Source: Adineta vaga
Taxonomy: Eukaryota; Animalia; Rotifera
Length of the DNA stretch: 64,000 nucleotides
Assembly: GCA_021613535.1 (NCBI GenBank)
Contig: CP075495.1
Location: 16,120,001-16,184,000, forward strand
Reading direction: 5' to 3'
Under the pieces are notes generated by a model. That model was not told the DNA's origin, searched no databases, and saw nothing but the letters and a program-made list of their open reading frames with translations. The translations under genes were made by a program, and so were the position numbers. This document shows positions 5,901 through 50,943 of the stretch, piece after piece (within the stretch, counting starts at the first letter, position 1; every line of letters begins with the position of its first letter).

Positions 5901-8900
5901 TATAGAAAATTCATTCCTTTTACCCGTTGTAAGTCCATGCGAGTATTTTCTTTTTCATTGTGCTGTTTAGTCCCGAAATGTGAACTGAAATTTATACGGA
6001 CGCTCCAAAATCCAATCGCCTACAATTATCGTCCACGATCTGTCGCTACTGGAGATTTCAACAATGATACGTGGCTAGATATTGCTGTTGGCAATTATGC
6101 TGCCGGTAATATCGCTATATTTCTTGGATACGGTAACGGTACGTTTGAAAATGCAATCATTTATTCACTTGGTTCTGGTTCTACTCCATACATGGTCGCT
6201 GTTGATGATTTAAACAATGATCACAAACTGGATTTTGCTATCGCAAATTTTGGTAGTAACAGTATTGCTGTATTTCTTGGATTAGGAAACGGTTCTTTCG
6301 TCATGGAAACATCACTTTCAACAGGCACATCTCGTCCAGTTTGGATTAACATAGCTGATTTCAATAATGACACTAAACTTGATATTGTCATTGCTAACTA
6401 TGGTACCGACAGTATAAGTATTAGTTTCGGATCTGGTAATGGACGGTTTTCATCACCAATTTCATACTTTATTGGCTATGATTCTCGGCCACTTGCAATT
6501 GCCAATGGAGATTTTAATGATGACAATCATGTGGATCTTGTCATCGCTAATTATGTCACAAATAATATTGCTATACTTTTCGGAAATGGAAACGGTAGTT
6601 TTGGTAATCAAACTACTTTCTCAACTGGTCCTAGTTTTCATCCATATTCGATCGTCGTTAGTCATTTCAATGACGACAACCTACTAGATATTGCCGTCGC
6701 GAATCATGGCACTAATAGTCTAGGTATATTCTTGGGTTATGGAAACGGACTTTTTTCAAGTCAAGTGATATATTCGCTGGGTACGGCTTCACCATATTCG
6801 ATTGGTGTTGGTGATTTTAATAAGGACAATCATTTGGATATAATAGTCAGCAATCATGGTACTAATAATATAGGCCTATTTTTTGGATATAAAAACGGTA
6901 GTTTTACAAGCCCACAAGTATATTCAACTGGATCTTCTTCTTCAGTTTCATTGGCTGTAGGTGACTTTAACAATGACGATGAAATAGACATTACTGTTGT
7001 CAATAATGATACTAATAGCATTGGTATACTTCAGGGTTCCTATAAGGCTTTTCAGACTCCAATGACATATCCTACTAACTCTCTACCAAGATCTATAGTT
7101 ACTGGTGATTTCAACAACGATACTCAATTAGATATTATCGTAGCTGCTGAGTGGGATAATAATATTGATGTACTTTTCGGATATGGTAACGGTTCGTTTG
7201 CAAATCGAATAACATATTCAACCGGTATTAATCCAAATTCTATAGCTGTTGGTGATTTTAATAATGATACTCGATTAGATGTCGCCGTCGCTAATCGCGA
7301 TTCTGATAATGTTGGAATACTTCACGGATATGTCAATGGCTCGTTTGCAGAGCAAATCACATATTCAACCGGTGCTGATTCTAGACCATATTGTTTAGCT
7401 GTTGGTGATTTAAATAATGATACTCGATTAGATATTGTCGTCGCTAACTCTAATACAAACAATGTGGGTGTACTGCTTGGCTATGGTAACGGTTCATTTG
7501 CTCATCAAATAACATATTTTACTGGCACTGGTTCTGTTCCACGCTCCGTAGGCATTGGTGATTTTAACAACGATGGGTTGCTGGACATCGTCGTTGCTAA
7601 TTATGGCAGTAACAATTTAGGTATATTTCTTGGATCCGCTAACGGATCTTTTAGCAATCAAACGACATATTCAACTGGTAATAGTTCCTCTCCATATTCT
7701 CTGGCTATTGGTGACTTTAACAATGATCATCGATTGGATATCACTGTCGCTAATTTTGCTGGTAGTAATATAGGTGTCTTTTTTGGATACGGTAACGGAT
7801 CTTTTGAAAATCAAATGACATACTCAACTGGTTCTTTTCCATCCTGTATAACTACTGGTAATTTCAACAATGACACTCTACTGGACATCGTTGTTGCTAA
7901 TTCTGGCAGTAATAATCTAGATTTTTTTTTCGGTTATGGTAATAAGCTGTTTTTACATCATAGAACATATGCAACTGACTATAATCCTGAAGGTATAGTT
8001 GTGGCTGATTTTAATAACGACGCTCGTCCAGATATTGTTGTGTCTAACTCTGGTAGCAACAATATTGGCGTACTACTCCGATATGATATTGGAAGTCTTA
8101 CAACGGGAATCACATTTGCATTAGCAGGTGCATCTCGTTTACGATATGTTGCCGTTGCTGATTTTGATAAAGACAATCGATTGGATATCGTGGTTAGTAA
8201 TTATGGTAGTGATAATATAGGAATTCTTTTTGGATATGCGAATGGCACGTTTGAAAATCAGTTGATGCTTACAACTGGCTTAAATTCGCATCCATATGCG
8301 ATGGTTGTCGGTGATTTCAACAATGATAATGAATTAGATGTCGGTACAGCTAACTATGGCAGTAAAAGTTTAAGTATGATTCTTGGGAAAGGAAAAAGAT
8401 TATTTACAACTCAATCATGGTATGGAAGTTCTTTCGATTCTCCTCCATTTGCTTTGGGTATTGGTGATTTTAACAACGATAAACGATCAGAGATTGTTGT
8501 CGCCTACGATGATATCGATAATATAGATATTTTCATTGCATATGATACTGGATCTTTTACAACAACCACATTGTCAACTGGATCTTATCCAGTATATATA
8601 TCCACTGTCGATTTAAATAATGACAAAATACTGGATATCATTGTCTCTAATTTTGGTTCTAAAACCGTAGGCATTTTTCTTGGATATAGTAATGGTTCAT
8701 TTGCAAATCAGATAACATATTCAACTGATAACAGACCATGGACTCTAGCTGTTGGTGATTTTAACCATGATACATACCAAGATATAGTAGTTCTTAATTA
8801 TTATGACGATAATGTAGAAATCCATTTTGGATATGGTAATGGTTCGTTTTCAAATCAAACAAAGTATTCAACTGGTATAGGTCCCATAGCAGCAGTAGTT

Positions 8901-10193
8901 GCTGATTTTAATAATGATACTCATCTGGATTTTATTATCGCCAATTTGATCGACAACAGTATCGATGTATTTCTTGGATATGGTAATGCTTCGTTTTCAT
9001 CTCAAACAACATATTCAACTGGTGCTGATTCTAATCCATACTGTCTGGTTGTTGCTGATTTTAATAACGATAGCCGATTGGATATAGCTGTTGGCAATCA
9101 AATCTCTAATAATATAGGGATATTTCTCGGTTATGGTAATGGATCTTTTACAACTCAAATAACATATGCAACTGGTCCGGATTCGAACCCGACCTCTATA
9201 GATATTGGTGATTTCAATAACGACACTATATTAGATATCGTTGTTGCTAATTTTGGTACTAACAATATCGGAGTTTTTATTGGATATGGGAATGGATCAT
9301 TTGCAACGCAAACAACATATCCAACTGGCACTGGTCCTCAGTATGTATCCGTTGGTGATTATAATAACGATGCTTTACTGGATATCGCTATTGCTAATGG
9401 TGGTGACAATAATGTAGGTGTGCTCCTAGGGCGTGTTGATGGTTCGTTTGATGCACAAACAACATATTCAACTGGTACTGATTCTAATCCACAATGGTTA
9501 ACTGTTGGTGATTTCAATAACGATGGTCGACTAGATATTGTTTCGTCCAATTCTAATGGCAACAATATATGTGTACTTTATGGATATGCTAGTGTAGCCT
9601 TTATATATCGGATGACATTAATAACTGGTAATGGTTCTCGTCCATACTCATTCGCCATTGCTGATTTTAATAATGATAACCATACAGATATTGTTGTAAC
9701 TAATTCTGGTAGTAATAATGTTGGTATTTTTCTTGGATATGGCAATTATTCTTTTACGCCACAAACGACATATTCAGTTGGATCCTTGCCATACTCTATA
9801 GCTATGGGTGATTTCAACAACGACAACTTGCTGGATATAACTGTCGCTAACTTTGGTAGCAATACTCTAGGTGTTCTTCTTGGACATGGTAATGGTTCAT
9901 TTTCTCATCAAATCATGTATTCAAGTGACACTAGACCAAGTTTTATAGCTGTTGCTAATTTTAATAACGATACCTTCTCAGACATCATTGTCGCTAATTA
10001 TGATACGAATAATATCGGTGTTTTTTTGGGACATGGAAATGGTTGTTTCGCAGATGTAATGATAGTTTCGATCGGTGTTGGATCTCATCCATTCTTCATT
10101 GTCGTTGGTGATTTTAACAATGATACAAAACTTGATTTTGCCGTTGCAAACGAGGGCAAAGACAACTTAGAAACATTTTTGCAAACTTGTTAA
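2992..10193 (+). CDS. Type II membrane FG-GAP/VCBS-repeat (beta-propeller) protein, about 1506 aa; exons 2992-3167, 3223-3344, 5971-10193
   Basis: GT-AG introns join in frame (CG|G, A|TC). Exon 2 encodes a TM helix (ISITVVAIILYMSISMATGVLLVYF). Exon 3 has about 27 repeats of GDFNNDxxLDIxVAN...GxGNGSF. The ORF-track start at 5937 lies in the intron. Confidence 0.88.
3372..4432. mobile_element. Mariner-like MITE with about 170-bp diverged TIRs, containing a nested insertion (about 3710-3986)
   Basis: TA|cgagggaacgttttc ... gaaaacgttccctcg with extended imperfect inverted arms. It lies in intron 2 of the FG-GAP gene. Confidence 0.65.
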
Positions 10194-10293
10194 TATTCTA
10201 TCTCTTATTTTATGCTTTTACTCTTGTTCCTGATTTTTAACATTCGCTTGTTGCTTTTTATATTTCATAGAAGTTCTTTGAGGGTGAGATAAT

Positions 10294-10338
10294 AGTCATG
10301 ACTAGTTTCGAACCCACTACGGTTCTCATCAGATGACT
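10294..10338 (-). ncRNA. Hammerhead ribozyme (type I, minimal), intact
   Basis: Minus strand: agtcat-CTGATGA-gaacc-gtagtg-ggttc-GAAA-ctaGTC-atgact. Perfect stems I and II, palindromic stem III (ACTAGT) and a GUC cleavage triplet. Confidence 0.9.
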
Positions 10339-10390
10339 TCATTCATTAAAAATGTTTAGTTGATAAAAGAGGATGAGAGTGAGACAAGCT

Positions 10391-10439
10391 GCCAAGATCC
10401 GGATTTCGTCTTCAACTACGAAGACACCATCATGTGCTT
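10391..10439 (-). ncRNA. Degenerate hammerhead-like motif
   Basis: Minus strand: caTGATGG-t-gtcttc-gtagtt-gaagac-GAAA-tccggATC. The core is mutated; stem II and a palindromic stem III are retained. Confidence 0.5.
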
Positions 10440-10574
10440 CATCTCTATTCAGAAACCTAATTAATCCGAAGAAAAATCGAATTCTTGAATAACCTTCTAT
10501 GTTCGAAATACCCGAATCGTAATTCCAATAGAACAAATCGACGATATATTCTTATGGCAGAGTGAGACAAGCTG

Positions 10575-10627
10575 CTAAGACGCGTGTTTCAACTGTTGTC
10601 TAGACAGTCAGTCGTCATTTGGCTTAG
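10575..10627 (-). ncRNA. Degenerate hammerhead-like motif
   Basis: Minus strand: ctaag..aTGACGA-ct-gactgt-ctagaca-acagtt-GAAA-cacgcGTC-ttag. It shares the 3' flank gcagcttgtctcactct with the 10391 motif. Confidence 0.5.
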
Positions 10628-11990
10628 AATCTGTGCTGGAAGACGAACGCTTCGAAAGTAACTGAAATTGCAATTGTGTGTAGTTCTAAGGAGTGGTTTT
10701 CTCTTGAAGAATTATTGAGCTCGATGAATATGTCTAAATCAGGAAATATAAATATGGTGAAGTAAACGTAATAAGCTTTTAACTGAAAAAAGTATTGATT
10801 GAATTCTTACTCAGAATGTTTCAGGTTTATGTCATTGATTAATATCATCTTGAGGTTGGTTGTTCCATTGAGAAATCACAGTTGTTGATTATAGTTGATA
10901 ACACAGATGTCCACAGGACACATTTTTTCGTCCTGTCCTGTCCTGTTCCAAAAACAAATGGACAGGACACGTCCTACTTTTTATTTAATGGATTTTTAAT
11001 AATTGGACTCAAAGTGTTGCATATTACTCGTATTCGTTAAGCAAATGTTTCTGTTCCGTATACGCGCTCTTAACATAAAATCCTGCTAGTAGTTCTCACA
11101 ATACAATGAACATAATAGAAGTGCATAAGAATGAAAAATATCACAAACATAATTACTTTTTCTATATAGATCTAATATATTTTGGCGTACGCAGCCATAG
11201 GTACCTCGTACGTTATATCTCTAGTTAGTTAAAAGCAAAATGTGATTTCTTTTTGTCAGTTTAAGTTCATGTATCATGCTAATAATCAGTTATTGTTTGA
11301 GATGTATATCTCACTGAAACTGTGGATTATAAAGTGTTTGTTTATAATCATTTTGTCGAAGTGTTATGCGTAGTACCTGTTAACGTACTTCAACTCTGAC
11401 AGAACTTTTTGTTGTGCACAAGATTTTTTTAACTGATTTATTTGACATAAAGCTAGCTTGAATGCTGCAGTCAGATTCACAACTTTGATATGATAGTGAC
11501 ACAGACATTTTAGTAAAAAGAATTGCCAGATGAAAGTCCATTGAAATTGTTAAATCAACAAGATTGGATATAAAATGATTAAAGAAATAATTTACAAATT
11601 ATAGTTATAGCGAAATTTACAGGTCAAACAATAACAGATTCTTAGCATCATAGGGTTGCATCCATGGAGATCCTACCACTTTTTTGAAGGAAGTCTTTTT
11701 TTCGATTTCTTTTTCGTCCAAAACGCCAGTATGGTCTAGAAAACACTTCTCATGGAAAAAATCAGACCCTTCTTATTGAAGATTTCAAGTTTTCGATCAT
11801 TTTCTCGGAATGCCTGTGGTATACTTTCAGAGATAAAGAAAATGACAGAAAAAACCTATAAATTCTTTAAAAGTGACTTTTTCAGAGTTTCCTGGTTCTG
11901 ATGCACATGAAAGACATCTAGAAACACTGTTGTCGAAAACAAAATCACACTCTTTCTGCTGGAACTGCTCAGTCCTGGGTGTGTTCTAGC

Positions 11991-12035
11991 AGCCATGACG
12001 CGTTTCGAACCCGCTACGGTTCTCATCAGATGGCT
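11991..12035 (-). ncRNA. Hammerhead ribozyme (type I, minimal), intact
   Basis: Minus strand: agccat-CTGATGA-gaacc-gtagcg-ggttc-GAAA-cgcGTC-atggct. It shows compensatory changes relative to the 10294 copy. Confidence 0.9.
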
Positions 12036-12822
12036 TCTCAATGAAAAAAGATCAGAATTAAATTATTTTCAACTGAAAATAGTCAAAAACAACCTAATTC
12101 TGTTAGTCAAAATAAGTTTAATGTTATTAGTGCAATGAATTAAGACGAATTGTATAAGTTTTTTGAGGTTAGACGTTAGTTTGGAATTCATTGAAGCTGT
12201 GGTTTGGTGTAGTCGTTTTTTTGCAAAGAAGTTTGATGGATGTTTGTTTTCAGAAACGTGGCTATTGGTTCGGATTGGCGTCGTTAATTTTTTTCGAATA
12301 TTGTATGTAATTGAATGATGGTCGATTGTATAGGATGAATGTAATGGTAATTTTATCACCTTTACTGGACTAGTTTATCTGTTTTGTAACTTGGAATGTG
12401 ATGTCTTGAATTATCATTGATTGATAATTAAAGACTAGAATCTTGTGAATCATTTTTAGACTGAAAATATAGAATGAACCGTTGTAAGTTGGTTCTCATT
12501 GTAGATTTGGACGGCTCGTGAGTTCCAGGGTACATTAGAAAACGATATATTCCTATAATCCTAAGATTTCGCATGAGTTTTAATATTAGGATACCGAAAG
12601 TTCAAATTAATGTGCAATTTTTCGTTTATGATGGTTTTTTCATGCATTCGATACATATCGGTCACGTACAAAGCGAAGAAGATTTTTTATCAATGTACAG
12701 AAAGAAGAAACAGAACATTTGTTCTGGAAAAAATACCAAAGGAAAGAAATAAAAGAGAGAGAAGGAATATAAAGTCGAAGAAGCAGAGAATCTTTTTTTT
12801 TTTCTTCATTCATATTAAGAAA

Positions 12823-14231: not shown

Positions 14232-17200
14232 AGATGCACGCAAAGCAAAAATAAAGTAAAAAAATTTTTTCTTTGATTTTCATACACCATTCGATAGAGA
14301 ATTTGATGGAGATCAAGAATATGTATGTCTTGCATTTTCTCAAACCTTCTTTTCCAGTGAAAAATTGAAAAAACTCAGAAGGTGTCGAAAACGGGTGATT
14401 TCGCAACTTTTCATAGATCACTCTTTTTTTCAAATATGTTACAAGTTGGAATCTTCTAACTCAGTTTTTCTGATAGATCATACAAAACTGAATAAGAAAC
14501 TGTTTTTAAATAATATTTAGAACAAAACATTGGCTCACAAAATAGTTTCCCAAGACCAAGACTCAGAAACGAGAACTTAATTTTGCAAGTCTATCACAGG
14601 TTTTTTGAGAAATGTTAGAGCCAATATTTTGACATGGTTAGATTGGTTAGATGCATAGCTACAAAGTTACGAAGAGTTTCAAAATCACATTTCCTCGCTG
14701 AGAAAATTCGATTTTACTGGGGACCCTCAAAATCGGTCAGGTAATTTTTTCTCGTTTTTTTGTATTCTCTTTCAACATAGTCAAAATATACTCAAATGGG
14801 TTAAAATTGATGCCCAATCTAGCAGATATACTCTAAGGATCTTTACAAAGCTTTTAAAAGGTTTTTGGAAGGTTTTTGAGCTAGTAACTATTAGTTTCTT
14901 GCCTTTCAGACTACATAAATGCAAATAAAGGGAAAACAAAACATTCTCTGTTCGTTAAAGTATCTACTGGCAAATTTATTCTAACATAGCCACAATGAAA
15001 ATCACAGATGATAAGAAAAAGAAAAACTTATCATTTTAAAATCACAAACTAAACGTTTAAACTAGTATTACTAATTCGTGTATGACTTTTGACTGTTCCA
15101 TCGCATTTAGGACTAAAGAACATCTTCATTACTTCTGCATACGACTGACCATCCTTATAAGCCGATAAACATTTCCAAAATCTTCGTAATAATTTCAAAT
15201 GAATTTCCTTATCTCGAAAGTTTTCACGTGATTCAATGATGAGCTTGAGCATAGTATTATACGTTTGATCAGTTTTTCGACGAACATACATTTTTTGTGA
15301 GCCCCATAAACCTTCAATACAATTAAGTTCGCAGTGAAACTTAGGACAAAATTTTATTGTAACACCATACTTTCTAGCTAACTGTTCTAACCGAGAAACC
15401 TGCAGATGGTGAAGCATATCATTAATTTAAGAAGGTTTAGTACAGTATAAAAGCTCACCGTGTTAAATGCCGGATGATCGGACAATAGTGCTCGTAGATC
15501 CTCCAGTTTAATCTTGGATGGCACTGTCACTTTCAATTCCTTAGCAATATACAGAAGACCTTTGCTCCTTCCATTGTCTGGTCCACTTTGAAAATAACAG
15601 TTTAAGATTTGGTTTTGTCCTTGTGCATCTGTATACTCAATTTTCTCCACCTTACAACTAGTTCCAATCGATTTGCCGAAGTCCAATAAACTATGTGACT
15701 TTGCTGAGTGTGTTCGTGCATTGTCAACAATAATTTCAATCATGTGATCTTTATACTGCTCTTTAAATTCTAACAACTGGAATAATCTTTCAAATTGTTC
15801 TAGTATAGTAGCATTATCAAAGTAGTTATCTTGACCAACATTAATTGAACCTGTAGCACTTCTGTCGACGTAGGTAATGCCTTTATCTTCTGCTAACTAG
15901 AACGTGGTGAGAAAAGAAAGAGAAATTATGTATTGGTACAAAAGCATTTGACGAACTACTCACTTGAGGATAGTTAACTAGAGCTTTTTCATATTCAGTT
16001 TTAGAAAGACTGAAGAATGGGCCAGAAGGATGTTGCACCAAGAAATCACTAATCATGTTCGATCGACCTCTTCCTTTTGAGTGAAATGGAGCTTCTGTTC
16101 CGAAAAACCATCGTTTTGCAGATACCTCTCCCGAACGAAAAGTACTTTCATCATGAACTAAAATTAGATAGATATTAAACTGCGAGTTTTATAATTAATT
16201 TCGAGAACAACGCTTACAAAGTAAAATACATGGCGGATTTTGAGTTCGTAGTGTCCATATGGGTTTATCATCTTTAGAGACTCGGTAATAATAATCCTTT
16301 CGATCAAGAAAATAGTCGATGAACTGTTGACGATGTTCGATAACGTCTGGACGTTCATGCCCTTCGAAATACGGTCGTTGGGAGTTCTCTTTGAATCGAG
16401 CGCCCCAACGACGTAAATCCAAACGACATGAAGAAACAGATCGAATCAAAACCCCGCCATCATTCTTTGTTAAGTTTGTCATATTGTAATACCTTGTATC
16501 GATGAAATTTGCTAAATCAATGGCTGTGAAATCGGCAGACTTCTGAGAACATCGTTCAAGTGTAAATTGTTTAGCTTCAATTTCGATTTCTGGGAAATAA
16601 TCATAAAATTCAGCGTTGTGCTTACCACCACGATTTTCACCTTGAAATTCCTCGAAATCACCAGAAATAAATATTTGTGACCATTTGTGTGCCGTCTGAG
16701 CTTTTAATGATCCAATATCACGTAAGAAATCATTACAATCATTCCAAGAAACCCCAAAACGTTTCAACGACATATAAAGTAATACGCTGAGGTATTTTAA
16801 TGGACATTGAGCTCTACATAGTTCAAATAAATCAGTAATATTACCTATTGTAAATTTCTCGTTGAAATCTGATGGTTCTTCATCGCTGAAATCATCGATT
16901 TCCGTGTCAGTTTGCTCGGAGGAGGAGATATTGCCGATTTGATTCTTCAGATGACCTGTTAATGAACGTTTTTTGTTGACAACAGTAAGTTGTAAACGAC
17001 GCTTCGTAGGTGGAGACATAATGAAGATTAATAATAACGATAATGATGAGTAATGTAAATATTATTTCTAATGGGTTGGTTGGTGTGTAATTTAATGAAC
17101 AAATCACTTTGCTATATATAGGATCATGAAATCAGAAGAGAGAGATAGTACTACAGAGAGTGATAACAAACACCTGGAGAATATATTACGAATACACAGA

Positions 17201-17948
17201 AAGAGTGATTGCAAAGGCCTGGAATAAGTAGATCGGTATTCGATTCACAAGAATATAGCAAAAAAGTGATTTTTGAAATATAACATATTATTCAGCCAAA
17301 GTCCACCAAGAAAGTTTTCCAGAGATCCTCTCAAAATCTCTAAAGTATATTTGATGGATTAGGCATCGATTTCAACCTATTTGAGTATATTTTGACTATG
17401 TTGAAAGAGAATACAAAAAAACGAGAAAAAATCACATGATCGATTTAGAGGAGTTCCCAGTAAAATCGAGTTTTCTCAGCAAGGAAATGTAGTTTTTGAA
17501 AAAACTCTTCGTAACTTTGTAGCTATGCATCTAACAAATCGAATCATGTCAAAATATTGGCTCTAACATTTCTCAAAAAACCTGTGATAGACTTGCAAAA
17601 TTAAGTTCTCATTTCTGAGTCTTGGTCTTGAAAAACTATTTTGTAAGGCAATGCTTCGTTCTAAAAATTATTTAAAACCAGTTTCTTATTCAGTTTTGTA
17701 TGATCTATCAGAAAAACTGAGTTAGAAGATTTCAACTTGTAACATATCTGAAAAAAAGAGTGATCTATGAAAAGTTGCGAAATCACCCGTTTTCGACACC
17801 TTCCGAGTTTTTTCAATTGTTCACCCGGAAAAAAAGTTTTAAAAAACGCAGAGCACATATATTCTTGATCTCCATCAAATTCTCTATCAAATGGTGTATG
17901 AAAATCAGAGAAAAAAAATTTCACTTTATCTTTGATTTCCGTGCATCT
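14232..17948 (-). mobile_element. IS630/Tc1/mariner-superfamily DNA transposon, about 600-bp TIRs, TA TSD
   Basis: TA|AGATGCACG...CGTGCATCT|TA. Inverted arms at about 14232-14830 and 17350-17948 flank a transposase gene. Confidence 0.9.
15049..17019 (-). CDS. DDE transposase, 594 aa, 4 exons (17019-16218, 16157-15964, 15896-15459, 15399-15049)
   Basis: The splices give a continuous frame. Catalytic motifs are FHDESTF, IIVDNARTH and CPKFHCELNCIEGLW. Confidence 0.85.
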
Positions 17949-32926: not shown

Positions 32927-35221
32927 TTAAACATATTTCAGTATCAGTTTTAATTCTTCATCGGAAGGTTTTTCATTTAATACTAATTTTGGTCGAGGCT
33001 TTTGTACAGAAGCACATGCTGTTCCACCAGTAATACCAATAAGAATATTTTCGTTTTTTGTGAAAACCTTTTGATCACCATTGTTAATTTCATGTAGAGT
33101 AGCTGCTAATGCTATAACGCCAGCTTTCTCGAGAATATTTCCTTCAAAAGTTTTGGTAATATTAATATTATTTTTTATTAAAATAGAAATAGCTTCGTCT
33201 AAATAATGACTGAAATCATTATTTCTGAGTACTTTAATTTTTCCACCATAGGTATCTAATATTTGTTTCACTTTATTGACCAAATCCCCTGGATTACTTC
33301 GAAATAATGTAGGTTCAATGAGTTCAACCTCGGTGTTAGTTCCATCTGTACTATTATTCCAAAATCCAAGTTCACGTGCAAATGGACAAACAGCTTCTTG
33401 TTGTATACCAAGAAGTTTTGGTATTGCTAGCTGTTGTTGTTGCTGTTGTTGATCTTGTAAAATGTTTGTAAAACCTTTATATATACCAATGGGACCGAAA
33501 GCACTTGATAATGATTGTACATACCAATTAAAGTTAATTTGATTTTCTATTGAATAATCTTTGATAAAATAACCCCTGATTTGATTAGCTTCGAATTGTA
33601 TATTCAAACTGGGCACTATTGGTATATTCGTTAAATCAGAAAAACGTTTTAATATACATTTCATTTCTGCTTCTGTTGAATTGACTTCGACTAATATCAC
33701 ATTATTAGGTACAAATATAGAGTTGATTTTATACGAATTTCGAGTTAAATAAAATTGTATCAGTGTAATCGACGGGTGTTTTCGAGCATAATGAATAAGA
33801 GACATAGCTGTATTACCTGAAGATTGTGCACATATGCAATTTATATTATTTTGCAAACAATTCGCGAAAGTTAAACAACCAAGAAAATCTTTAAATGTTG
33901 CACTTGGACTCATTGTTGTCATATCATAGAGAAATAATTTTATATTGGTATCACGATAAAAAGCAGCATCAATTATTTGTTCTTGTTCGTTCAATGTTGC
34001 TTCCAGTAAATATTGACGTTTCATATGTGGTAAAACCACGGGTGCATATTTTAAAAGAATACTTGGTGAATTTTGCACTTTTAATTTAAAATTTTCTAAT
34101 GTTATTTGCCCAGCAAGATTAAGTGAAACGTCTGTTGGTGAATGAATAATTGTTAGGGATAATGCGTCACGTACATATCGGTCAATACTATATTCAGATG
34201 TATAGCCCGAACCACCAAACAGTTGGAGACAAGATAAACAAATATCCTTAGTAGTTTCTGTAACAAATACTTTACATGCAATGAATTTTGTTTTGTCGGT
34301 CGCATTAAGATTCGAACAACAATCATCAAACAAACTCTGAGCTGCGTGGTATTTGGTTAATAATTGCCCGAGTCTCAGACGTACAACCGGTTCTTCCGCT
34401 AAACTTCCAACAATTCCATTACGGTTACGTTTCAATAAATAAAATGAGTATTTTTCGATTAGTCTTCTAGCAATGCCAATTGCACGTGCTGATGATATCA
34501 TTGATAGAATTCTACGTGACGATTCAACAAGTATTCTCCCATCATAATGAAGTTCTCCAATAATATCTTTAGTTTTAACTGCACAGTTTTTAAACGTAAC
34601 TGGTGCTAAGCTTATGCCTTTAACACCCATACGATCCCAATCACTCTCAACCTTTAATCCAGCTGTGTCTTTCTCAACAAGTACAACACATGTATTTATA
34701 GATCGTGAATTTGAACGTTCCTCTATAACACGGGCTGAAACGGCATATATATCAGCATTTCTTGAGTTAGTAATCCATTCTTTTCTTCCCGATAATGACC
34801 ATGTCTCCGACGTTTCACTAACATTTGTTAAGCATGTTTCCAAGTGTTCAAGCACTTTCATATTTTTCTCATTGTTCGCATGCGATGCGATTAGTTTTCC
34901 TTTAGCTAGTAATGGTAAATATTTCTGTTTTTGTTGATCAGTGCCATACTGAACAATATAATCACACACACGTAAATGACTATCCAAAATGGAACATAAA
35001 CTAACCCATCCACTTGATAATTCTTCGATCACCTTTAAGCGTGTTAGGATATTACTTTCCAAACCCTCATAGGCTTGAGGTATTATCAAACCGAATAGAC
35101 CCATTGATTTCATGGTTTCAATTAATTCTGTTGGGTAAATATTATTTTTATCAAAATATTCTGCACTTGGTATAATCACACGATTAACAAAAGTTTTAAC
35201 TTCCCGAATTAACGTTGACAT
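32927..35221 (-). CDS. Acyl-CoA dehydrogenase-fold / PLP-dependent (fold type II, threonine synthase-like) fusion protein, 764 aa
   Basis: N-terminal half: GLFGLIIPQAYEG, YGTDQQKQKYLP, SGRKEWITN, MGVKG, QLFGGSGY..EY.IDRYVRDA. C-terminal half: SPSATFKD (PLP Lys), AQSSGNTA, PKLLGIQ, EKAGVIALA, ITGG. The CDS has no introns; a likely 5'UTR intron is at 35244-35282. Confidence 0.88.
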   Translation of the reverse strand: MSTLIREVKTFVNRVIIPSAEYFDKNNIYPTELIETMKSMGLFGLIIPQAYEGLESNILTRLKVIEELSSGWVSLCSILDSHLRVCDYIVQYGTDQQKQKYLPLLAKGKLIASHANNEKNMKVLEHLETCLTNVSETSETWSLSGRKEWITNSRNADIYAVSARVIEERSNSRSINTCVVLVEKDTAGLKVESDWDRMGVKGISLAPVTFKNCAVKTKDIIGELHYDGRILVESSRRILSMISSARAIGIARRLIEKYSFYLLKRNRNGIVGSLAEEPVVRLRLGQLLTKYHAAQSLFDDCCSNLNATDKTKFIACKVFVTETTKDICLSCLQLFGGSGYTSEYSIDRYVRDALSLTIIHSPTDVSLNLAGQITLENFKLKVQNSPSILLKYAPVVLPHMKRQYLLEATLNEQEQIIDAAFYRDTNIKLFLYDMTTMSPSATFKDFLGCLTFANCLQNNINCICAQSSGNTAMSLIHYARKHPSITLIQFYLTRNSYKINSIFVPNNVILVEVNSTEAEMKCILKRFSDLTNIPIVPSLNIQFEANQIRGYFIKDYSIENQINFNWYVQSLSSAFGPIGIYKGFTNILQDQQQQQQQLAIPKLLGIQQEAVCPFARELGFWNNSTDGTNTEVELIEPTLFRSNPGDLVNKVKQILDTYGGKIKVLRNNDFSHYLDEAISILIKNNINITKTFEGNILEKAGVIALAATLHEINNGDQKVFTKNENILIGITGGTACASVQKPRPKLVLNEKPSDEELKLILKYV

Positions 35222-35801
35222 TATTTGCACTTGAGTTTAAATCTACAACCAAGAAATATGTTTAAATGAAATTAACTCATACCGTGTTTTTTCCTTCAAA
35301 GCGTTCCTCTCGTTCTAATATTCCCTTCTATTGATTCAAAAGATCTTACAATTACTTCAGAATTCTTTAGACTACACCCATGAGATATTTTGAATTATGT
35401 TAAAGATTTTGAAGTGTTCTTTCTAGAAATAGTCTCCAAACAGACAAGATTTTTCGAAAATGCGTTGAAACGCACAGAAAGACGGAAAAAATCGAGAAAA
35501 AGTGGTCGATTTTCTCATAGGTGTTATCTGTGACGAAATAATAAATACGACTCACGAGGGCGGAGCAAACGAACATTTTTTCTCTTTTTGTGTACTCAAA
35601 AAGTGAGTACACTACTAGAATCGATCAGTGTGTCCGGCCGTCCGTTTACACGATAACTCGTCACAACTACATCCGATTGAGCTAAAATTGTGTACACAGA
35701 ATTATTTCATCAATGTCTCGGTCGAGTTCGAAGATGACCTCAATCGGTTGTACCATTGTTCACCTACAGAAAAATTTCCGAATATCTCTACATAAAAAGT
35801 A

Positions 35802-49575: not shown

Positions 49576-50943
49576 ATGACGTCCATTAATATTTTAGGTG
49601 CATCATTTTTAGTCACCTTGACGGCATTTGTGATGAGTCTTGATGGTGGCAAAACATACGCTCAAGAAGTTGCCGAAGAGGGAAAAAAGACTTTTAACAA
49701 TATATTCTCATATACAGGTGGCGATTGTGTCAATCTTCATCACGGTGACGGCGCGCTTCCACCACATCCGGTCGTACGAGATGCACTGAGAGAGTTGGCC
49801 GACAAAATAGACGTATGGAACGAATCGGGAAGAGGGGAGAACAGCATTAAATTGAATCGCTACCGTCCACCCCTTATCACGATTACGTCTGACCTTCATA
49901 ACGTCATTCTGGAGGACTTTGCTAAATCGATGCCATCTAATTTCGACCGAACTAGGGTCGGTGTGCAGATCGGCGTTGGCACAACACATCTGGCCTCTGC
50001 TGTATTTAACTATTTTCGACATTCAAAAGACACTTTACTTATGTTTGCACCCACCTATACGTTGTTCCTCCAGTGTGTCTCGAACGTTGGCGATAATGTC
50101 CATCTTGTCAGACCAAAGAGTGATGGTCAAATTACGGCTGAGCATATTCAAAAAGCGCTTGATGAACATCCAGAGACAAGAGCTATTTTTCTTATCAATC
50201 CAAACAATCCAACGGGTCAATATTTTACAAAAGATGAACTTGAGAAAATCGGACGTTTAGCAGTTGAACGTCAACTTATTGTCATAGTTGACGAGATTAT
50301 GTACAGACTCATCCTCGATCACAACAGTACATTTGTAAGTATGGCATCAATCGACATTGATGGCACAAGCATGATTGATCGGACAATTACTTTTCGAGGT
50401 CTTTCTAAAGATCATGGATTGGCAAGTCTTCGATCAGGCTATGCGATTGGCACAAAAGAACTTATTGAGAAACTAAATTTTACCTCATTTTTATTTTTAA
50501 CCACTTGCAACGTGGATATTCTTGCTCAACATGTGACTATAGCGGCATTATCTCGCACGCCGGATGAATACTATCAGGCTCAGCGAGATCTTCTTCGCCG
50601 TCACATAGATATTGTTACCACCTCAGTCGACGATATCAATCGTAGAGCTGGACATGAGGCGTTGAAAACTGAACGGCCTCCTGCTGGAATGTTTCAAATT
50701 ATTGATGCAATTAGTTTGCGAGGTCAGTTTTATAATGGGAAAATTTTGGACAATGATGCTACACTCTGTAAATTATTATTGGAAGAAGAAATGGGTGGTG
50801 TTAGCTTTCTTCCAGCCTCTATTGGAGGATATGATGCTAAAGATATGAAATTTCGACTTACACTATCTTCGATTGAGAACGACATAATCTTGGGCATGAA
50901 AAGACTCGATGATTTCATACAGAAAGTATCACATGCTCATTAA
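49576..50943 (+). CDS. PLP-dependent aminotransferase class I/II-fold enzyme, 455 aa, intronless
   Basis: Motifs APTY, LINPNNPTG, IVDEI, GLSKDHGLASLRSGY (PLP Lys), PPAGMF and FRLTLS. Confidence 0.92.
   Translation: MTSINILGASFLVTLTAFVMSLDGGKTYAQEVAEEGKKTFNNIFSYTGGDCVNLHHGDGALPPHPVVRDALRELADKIDVWNESGRGENSIKLNRYRPPLITITSDLHNVILEDFAKSMPSNFDRTRVGVQIGVGTTHLASAVFNYFRHSKDTLLMFAPTYTLFLQCVSNVGDNVHLVRPKSDGQITAEHIQKALDEHPETRAIFLINPNNPTGQYFTKDELEKIGRLAVERQLIVIVDEIMYRLILDHNSTFVSMASIDIDGTSMIDRTITFRGLSKDHGLASLRSGYAIGTKELIEKLNFTSFLFLTTCNVDILAQHVTIAALSRTPDEYYQAQRDLLRRHIDIVTTSVDDINRRAGHEALKTERPPAGMFQIIDAISLRGQFYNGKILDNDATLCKLLLEEEMGGVSFLPASIGGYDAKDMKFRLTLSSIENDIILGMKRLDDFIQKVSHAH

Follow-up and report, generated by a model that had tools for sequence, protein, structure and literature searches.

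A 64,000-nucleotide (nt) stretch of the genome of the bdelloid rotifer Adineta vaga (NCBI GenBank assembly GCA_021613535.1, contig CP075495.1, positions 16,120,001 to 16,184,000 of the forward strand; this whole stretch is referred to here as the window, with positions counted from its first letter) carries a single gene in which an acyl-CoA dehydrogenase (ACAD) fold is joined to a threonine-synthase-like, fold-type-II pyridoxal phosphate (PLP) domain. The gene is very likely the product of an operon-pair fusion, a bacterial gene acquired horizontally and now resident and selected in a bdelloid rotifer. Overall, the evidence is best explained, and probably correctly so, by an acquired Rosetta-stone fusion of two enzymes that work together.

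The gene occupies an uninterrupted open reading frame (ORF) on the minus strand (32927..35230; 767 amino acids (aa) counted from a GTG), of which 764 codons follow from the ATG at 35221 and which is closed by a TAA at 32929-32927. In the ORF list it stands alone in its size class across the surrounding tens of kilobases and, because the window has a GC content of 31-45 % and only seven ORFs >150 aa in 64 kb, an open frame of 2.3 kb is far beyond chance. The contig is 16,274,841 bp long, one of six in the 100.8-Mb assembly, and the gene, single-copy in its own genome (genome search), lies ~120 kb from the contig end in a gene-poor, repeat-rich subtelomeric region. An earlier note, made from the letters of this DNA, had read one 764-aa frame joining an ACAD fold to a PLP domain, free of internal stops and introns, with AT-rich codons and the motifs SPSATFKD, SSGNTA and DQQQQQQQ. 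The ORF list, Pfam and AlphaFold2 (AF2) models bear out the joined frame, which is open and collinear with its homologues; the motifs are present at aa 438-445, aa 466-472 (as QSSGNTA) and aa 590-597, and GC is 0.328 overall and 0.203 at third codon positions (GC3). For the probable 5' untranslated-region intron of that note, the sequence offers a candidate in the 5' leader. The parts of the gene are as follows.

32927..35221, minus strand: complete intronless coding sequence (CDS), 764 codons plus TAA (ORF list; collinear with six full-length homologues).
34115..35221, minus strand: N-terminal half (N-half), ACAD fold with N-alpha, middle-beta and C-alpha domains, aa 1-369 (Pfam PF02771, PF02770 and PF00441; AF2; Foldseek).
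34130..34153, minus strand: TIIHSPTD motif, aa 357-364, with His360 at the catalytic Glu column of the canonical YEGT (column alignment; hidden Markov model (HMM) alignment to solved ACADs).
34070..34114, minus strand: junction, aa 370-384, with bacterial ACAD C-termini and PALP N-termini aligning on either side.
32930..34069, minus strand: C-terminal half (C-half), DUF6002/PALP-family threonine-synthase-like fold-type-II PLP domain, aa 385-764 (weak PALP match; relatives; AF2; Foldseek).
33890..33892, minus strand: codon of Lys444, the predicted PLP Schiff-base lysine in SPSATFKD, aligned to the FKD Lys of Thermus threonine synthase.
33806..33826, minus strand: QSSGNTA, fold-type-II Asn loop, aa 466-472, aligned to STGNTA of threonine synthase.
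33299..33319, minus strand: IEPTLFR, aa 635-641, a DUF6002/PALP signature absent from threonine synthases (family alignments).
33020..33034, minus strand: ITGGT, aa 730-734, conserved C-terminal glycine-rich loop (family alignments).
33431..33454, minus strand: DQQQQQQQ tract, aa 590-597, CAA/CAG codons, in a variable surface loop (alignment; model).
35243..35282, minus strand: candidate intron of 40 nt (GT..AG) within the 5' leader, located 21 nt ahead of the ATG (read from the sequence, GT at 35282 and AG at 35243).

At the fusion point no linker has been added, the ACAD C-terminus being followed at once by the PALP N-terminus, and in the alignment with the six full-length homologues the whole frame is collinear, the poly-Q tract, a private CAA/CAG expansion, being the sole private insertion. 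Structures were predicted for the two halves separately, and both models are confident. In the N-half (aa 4-369), Pfam identifies Acyl-CoA_dh_N, _M and _1 (E-values 8e-25, 2e-14 and 9e-19), all above the cut-offs, and the AF2 model (predicted local distance difference test (pLDDT) score, 93.7) matches 4iv6, 1buc and MCAD in Foldseek with a TM score of 0.90; Pfam and the model agree on the three-domain ACAD architecture of N-terminal alpha, middle beta and C-terminal alpha domains. The motifs of the flavin adenine dinucleotide (FAD) site are kept in the canonical ACAD columns, as EWITNS (WxTN), FGGSGY (GGxGY) and RDA (RD), and the N-half is predicted to bind FAD.

For the C-half, the Pfam PALP match (aa 426-618) is weak, at 26.7 bits under a 35-bit cut-off, while the AF2 model (pLDDT 94.3, dipping to 79 at the poly-Q tract) has as its best PDB matches the class II threonine synthases 2zsj, 6nmx and 1uim (TM 0.67-0.75, 16 % identity), followed by CapA2, threonine deaminases and TrpB. 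Both elements of a fold-type-II PLP site are in place in the alignment to 1uim, with Lys444 at the FKD lysine and SSGNTA at STGNTA. Lys444 is invariant in 20 family members and >90 % conserved in 54, N470 of QSSGNTA is invariant in the DUF6002/PALP family alignments and, in the ITGGT loop, domain residues T352, G353 and G354 are invariant or nearly so; the C-half is predicted to bind PLP. The DUF6002/PALP family has invariant motifs of its own, among them IEPTLFR and GxQQE, and all of the family-invariant residues are present in the rotifer protein, though the Pfam DUF6002 model gave no match on that protein and merely faint matches on many bacterial members. Among NCBIfam models, the similarities are to a generic ACAD and, weakly, to threonine synthases, every score falling far short of its cut-off.

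A profile search with the C-half finds stand-alone proteins of ~380 aa with PF00291 and PF19465 (DUF6002) at E-values of 1e-75 to 1e-42, and the C-half shares 30-38 % identity with its stand-alone bacterial relatives (Streptomyces eurocidicus, S. yokosukanensis, a Pseudonocardiaceae metagenome-assembled genome (MAG) and metagenomes). A pair of ACAD and DUF6002/PALP genes is present in Streptomyces, Kitasatospora, Pseudonocardiaceae, a Campbellbacteria MAG and metagenome contigs. The ACAD gene is directly upstream of the PALP gene on the same strand in loci L012, L013 and L075 (spacing of 61-91 bp in L012 and L013), and the order in S. yokosukanensis (KQ948214) is ACAD, PALP and an AMP-binding ligase, the genes abutting or overlapping. 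Scanning 185,579 species genomes yielded 59 loci, and a partner ACAD occurs within ~1.5 kb in 19 of the 23 bacterial loci with a PALP match >155 bits (tblastn). The arrangement varies, with a same-strand adjacent pair in seven loci (L012, L013, L018, L024, L027, L034 and L035), a single fused frame in two (L021 and L076), a reversed order in the Campbellbacteria MAG (L017), and a divergent pair in other Streptomyces and Kitasatospora loci, several of which have a 2-oxoglutarate (2OG) oxygenase in between. The four exceptions are L016, L023, L031 and L033, with L031 and L033 being full loci without an ACAD match, and none of the members of a distant PALP subfamily (Acidobacteriota, Thermodesulfobacteriota and others) had a partner ACAD neighbour in the locus scan. 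The rotifer N-half is 33-34 % identical to the partner ACADs versus ~26 % to other ACADs. The earlier note had traced the gene to adjacent operon genes of bacterial origin, and both elements of that proposal hold, as the nearest non-eukaryotic relatives of the two halves form one conserved bacterial gene pair whose members are same-strand neighbours in numerous bacteria.

Two other features of these loci were observed. A conserved protein of 184-201 aa without a Pfam family, hydrophobic by eye, is encoded directly upstream of the pair in L012 (8170-8775) and L013 (5144-5698), the two copies being 69 % identical, and both loci also carry mobile-element genes (Tn7-like TniB/TniQ and integrase). 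Because the pair adjoins Tn7-like and integrase genes there, a PADLOC scan was run on the fusion, the bacterial pair and the small upstream protein; it gave no match and a reading as a defence system was dropped.

Phylogenetic trees were built for the C-half (126 rows) and the N-half (80 of 135 rows, LG+G4; leaving out P0006, P0048 (= L076), rows <250 aa and the lowest-scoring generic ACADs), both as quick searches with support by SH-aLRT only (values in brackets). In the N-half tree, the PALP-neighbouring ACADs and the eukaryotic fusions constitute one clade (100) separate from ordinary ACADs, so the dedicated partner ACAD of the rotifer C-half is the N-half of the same polypeptide, and the rotifer sequences form a clade (100) with a short contig, L079, described below. 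In the C-half tree, the rotifer-like sequences are monophyletic (97) and nested in a set of 11 rows (98) that includes the short sequences P0017, P0053 and P0056, with the bacterial groups outside this set and the C-half as a whole nested within the DUF6002/PALP family. The internal groups of the N-half tree (the L017 group, the L012/L013 group, Actinomycetota and L076) mirror those of the C-half tree, so that the two families have co-evolved as a pair; placed separately, as the earlier note had advised, both halves fall in the clades of this co-evolving pair.

Fused forms were sought by a word search and an exhaustive profile search of 1.84 billion representatives. Full-length ACAD+PALP proteins are few, consisting of AT-rich, rotifer-like sequences (P0002-P0006, P0008 and P0047; 38-75 % identity) and the bacterial P0048; a junction-spanning fragment (P0041) is also among the matches, and a partial sequence labelled Adineta ricciae shows 65 % identity. 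A fused relative scores at least the sum of its halves and would therefore rank near the top of the list, while fused forms inside 50 %-identity clusters, such as L021, escape a search of representatives. Other two-stretch matches of ~750-790 aa were rejected as fused relatives, being ACAD-ACAD tandems. The architecture is rare in this collection. Its description as unfamiliar from animals stands insofar as the only animal examples are bdelloid-like sequences, but it also occurs in two bacteria and in a contig that appears to read TAA and TAG as Gln. One rotifer-like 67-kb contig (L010; ENA ERZ26165376) encodes the fusion twice, once on each strand (10001-12262 and 15141-17552), and the two copies have diverged. 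A fragment of a non-ribosomal peptide synthetase (NRPS) condensation/PCP gene is located at a distance of 8.6 kb from one copy. P0006 lacks 31 aa of the PLP half through a deletion and carries a decapeptide repeated 12 times in tandem, and conserved ACAD motifs of P0005 contain substitutions.

The two bacterial fusions have separate positions. Streptomyces sp. NPDC050485 (L021) encodes both domains in one 756-aa frame, whose sister in both trees is the unfused pair of S. yokosukanensis. The ACAD stop codon of S. yokosukanensis, TGA, abuts the PALP ATG in frame (CGC TGA ATG; L034:7884-8033), the corresponding junction in L021 is CGC CGA ATG (L021:7806-7925), and a single TGA-to-CGA substitution therefore makes the Streptomyces fusion, an instance of the route from operon genes to fusion that had been suggested from the rotifer sequence. 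The second (P0048/L076), a 742-aa fusion on a contig of 66 % GC among tightly packed bacterial genes (ATP-grasp, transglutaminase, pseudouridine synthase and GH57), is placed elsewhere in both trees. Judged by these placements, the pair has been fused independently at least three times, in L021, in L076 and in the eukaryotic clade.

The contig L079 (Logan SRR29333091; 2177 bp, 44.5 % GC) has the same fused frame with 43 % identity over 725 codons; TAA or TAG occurs in frame eight times, and both TGA and frameshifts are absent. At three of these eight positions the rotifer proteins have an invariant Gln (Q97, Q569 and Q608), and the source organism probably reads TAA/TAG as Gln in a ciliate-like manner; such a code is used by many ciliates. 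L079 and the rotifers also have in common a His at the former catalytic Glu column of the ACAD, and the shared frame and His imply that the fusion predates the split of the two eukaryotic lineages. The eukaryotic copies were either already fused in an unsampled donor or passed between eukaryotes.

Within the rotifer, the gene has the properties of a settled transfer, being nested among bacterial sequences in the trees, inside a 16.27-Mb contig and host-like in composition. Its GC and GC3 are like those of an intronless, foreign-looking ORF of the same window (GC3 0.236), and the bacterial loci with measured GC (L012, L013, L016 and L076) are at 50-66 %. Both halves are under purifying selection, with dN/dS relative to the 75 %-identical P0002 of 0.23 in the ACAD half and 0.25 in the PLP half (NG86; rough values, as composition is skewed).

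Since the pair has co-evolved and been fused independently several times, the two enzymes almost certainly share a metabolite as their target, whether by catalysing successive steps or by forming a complex. The surroundings of the bacterial genes suggest which kind of metabolism may be involved. Further genes at the Streptomyces loci are those of an AMP-binding ligase, a 2OG-Fe(II) oxygenase, an O-methyltransferase, an Asn-synthase-like protein and a SARP regulator, while a Myxococcota MAG (L023:1419-9104; JAHZIX010000042) has on one strand an NRPS (C-A-PCP-C), a B12-binding radical-SAM protein and DUF6002/PALP, without an ACAD, which links the PLP family to the synthesis of non-ribosomal peptide building blocks. 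In the proposed scheme, the flavin half would oxidise or activate a short acyl thioester derived from an amino acid, or a small substrate related to it; the PLP half, through Lys444, would then carry out a beta/gamma elimination, replacement or isomerisation at the amino-acid end, and the resulting non-proteinogenic amino acid would serve secondary, NRPS-type or small-molecule metabolism. In one possible version, the ACAD-like half would desaturate beside the thioester to give a beta,gamma-unsaturated amino acid, an intermediate class of threonine-synthase chemistry. This flavin-then-PLP sequence is offered tentatively, and what kind of substrate is used, in which order the steps run and what biological role they have are all conjectural. 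The coupled oxidation and beta/gamma-elimination or replacement proposed in the earlier note is plausible on the same terms. More speculative, and rather doubtful, is that the fusion and the bacterial pair represent a new type of coupled flavin/PLP catalyst in which an ACAD fold without its catalytic base hands a beta,gamma-unsaturated or otherwise activated amino-acid intermediate straight to the PLP domain, so that an animal and a ciliate-like protist would make an unusual amino acid, possibly for chemical defence.

Several observations weigh against the interpretation as two cooperating enzymes of bacterial origin. The catalytic Glu is at neither the YEGT (MCAD E376) nor the helix-G (IVD E254) column in the alignments, and the residue at the former Glu position varies within the partner clade (His in the rotifers and L079, Asp in the L012/L013 group, Gly in Streptomyces and L076); with the Glu missing and its replacement variable, classical alpha,beta-dehydrogenation is not assured. 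In the C-half, a family-conserved Gln stands at the column of Thermus Arg160 (HMM alignment, of low confidence there), the ligand of the substrate phosphate in Thermus threonine synthase, and the substrate is therefore probably not O-phosphohomoserine. No partner gene (ligase, oxygenase or NRPS) was found within +/-10 kb of the fusion in the window and, although the genome is rich in NRPS condensation domains, the closest that were scored lie ~170 kb away. The nearest non-rotifer relatives are short contigs, and a literature search found no paper on DUF6002/PF19465 or on a cluster of a threonine-synthase-like protein and an ACAD, leaving the family uncharacterised.

The first of these points bears on an unlikely alternative, that the ACAD half is no longer redox-active and serves as a scaffold, a substrate-binding module or a non-redox flavoprotein, with the PLP half as the sole catalyst. 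In addition to the absent and variably replaced Glu, the clade has HA(Y/N)NE, together with a deletion of one residue, in place of TExxAGSD and SARA in place of AAQA, and the active site of the partner-ACAD clade has, on the evidence of these alignments, been remodelled. The second-best NCBIfam similarity, far below its cut-off, is to 3-sulfinopropanoyl-CoA desulfinase, a non-redox flavoprotein. However, WxTN, GGxGY and RD are kept in a near-perfect ACAD fold, distant bacteria retain the ACAD partner, and the Adineta-like N-half is as constrained as the C-half. A deeper rotifer-like lineage (P0008/P0047, from L009 and L077) has an ACAD half without GGxGY, the catalytic-loop motifs and most Pfam matches, with a dN/dS of 0.40 compared to 0.09 in its PLP half; this lineage suggests that the PLP half may be able to function without an intact ACAD half, as the alternative would have it.

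That the gene is a decaying relic of transfer without a present function is improbable. There are no pathway partners nearby, and P0005 and P0006, from one contig, look degenerate in the motif substitutions, deletion and repeat expansion noted above; but a frame of 764 codons has stayed intact in DNA of 33 % GC, dN/dS is ~0.24 in both halves and the cofactor motifs are all kept.

It is very improbable that the gene is the animal's primary-metabolism threonine synthase, or a cysteate synthase, with an ACAD domain attached. The top structural matches are threonine synthases, with CapA2 also present, and NCBIfam gives weak matches to thrC and cysteate synthase, yet the scores (28.1 bits against a cut-off of 167.1 for thrC, TIGR00260; 35.9 against 421 for the best threonine-synthase model) range over 26-36 bits where cut-offs are 167-421, and identity to solved threonine synthases is 16 %. 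The GNAGN PLP-phosphate loop of threonine synthase is QxLSS in the C-half, the Arg position for the substrate phosphate differs, family motifs such as IEPTLFR are not found in threonine synthases, and the bacterial members occur in accessory or secondary-metabolite contexts. The C-half is threonine-synthase-like in fold and is not a threonine synthase.

Finally, an artefact of assembly or contamination (bacterial DNA or a chimeric join) is hardly credible, for although both halves are bacterial in origin and the gene lacks introns and stands alone in repeat-rich subtelomeric DNA, it lies inside the 16.27-Mb contig with a host-like GC3 of 0.20 unlike that of any measured bacterial relative, the same fused frame recurs in at least seven other independent AT-rich contigs, and the NCBI A. 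ricciae protein spans the junction.

Elsewhere in the window, 10 ORFs flanking the fusion gave no Pfam family, and in a comparison with the 75 %-identical homologue the CDS aligns and the flanks do not. An intronless 1418-aa ORF (5937-10193, plus strand), the foreign-looking ORF referred to above, encodes ~24 FG-GAP/VCBS-type repeats with weak NCBIfam similarity to a bacterial protein dependent on the type IX secretion system (T9SS) and is probably a further foreign gene of the same subtelomeric stretch. A second PLP enzyme is encoded 14 kb from the fusion by an intronless 455-aa ORF (49576-50943, plus strand) of the class I/II aminotransferases, for which the best NCBIfam similarity, well below the cut-off, is to GntC-like PLP enzymes.

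The repeated, independent fusion is strong genomic evidence that the ACAD clade and the DUF6002 PLP family work together, and it recasts DUF6002, a domain so far without an assigned function, as a well-defined question about two enzymes, for which a single-polypeptide version is ready to be expressed. The one-base difference between the two Streptomyces junctions shows how an operon pair can become a bifunctional gene in one step, and the same fused gene in an organism that seems to read TAA/TAG as Gln hints at spread between eukaryotes or a donor that was already fused. The foreign biosynthetic repertoire of bdelloids gains an enzyme that is neither an NRPS nor a polyketide synthase (PKS). 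Nothing is overturned, as bacterial-to-bdelloid transfer and Rosetta-stone fusions are both well known.

Compared to known systems, the closest is the bacterial ACAD+PALP pair (S. yokosukanensis KQ948214, S. eurocidicus and L012/L013) with the bacterial fusions, which share with the rotifer gene the order ACAD then PALP, the motifs TFKD, QSSGNTA, QxLSSAxGP, GxQQE, IEPTLFR and TGG, and the lack of the canonical ACAD Glu in all. The rotifer gene differs in its identity of only 30-38 %, its AT-rich composition, its private poly-Q loop and the absence of ligase or oxygenase neighbours, and its His at the former Glu column is common only to the contig with Gln-reading TAA/TAG and not to the bacterial pair. 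The short- and branched-chain ACADs (PDB 4iv6, 1buc, 1ivh and MCAD 3mdd) have in common with the N-half the three-domain fold, WxTN, GGxGY and RD, and differ from it in possessing the catalytic Glu (MCAD-E376 or IVD-E254), TExxAGSD and AAQA. The class II threonine synthases (2zsj, 6nmx and 1uim) likewise share the fold, the FKD Schiff-base Lys, the S-G-N-T loop and the C-terminal TGG loop with the C-half, which is set apart by its 16 % identity, sub-cut-off scores, QxLSS, Gln in place of Arg160 and N-terminal region. In bdelloids, a six-chromosome assembly and an enrichment of foreign genes in subtelomeres have been described (Nowell et al. 2024; PMC11258130), and the main text of that study makes no mention of the fusion gene, nor of acyl-CoA, pyridoxal or threonine synthase. 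Unlike the acquired NRPS/PKS clusters described there, the fusion is not an NRPS or PKS and has no recognisable cluster in the window, but it shares with them a bacterial origin, a subtelomeric position, an intronless frame and a probable link to secondary metabolism.

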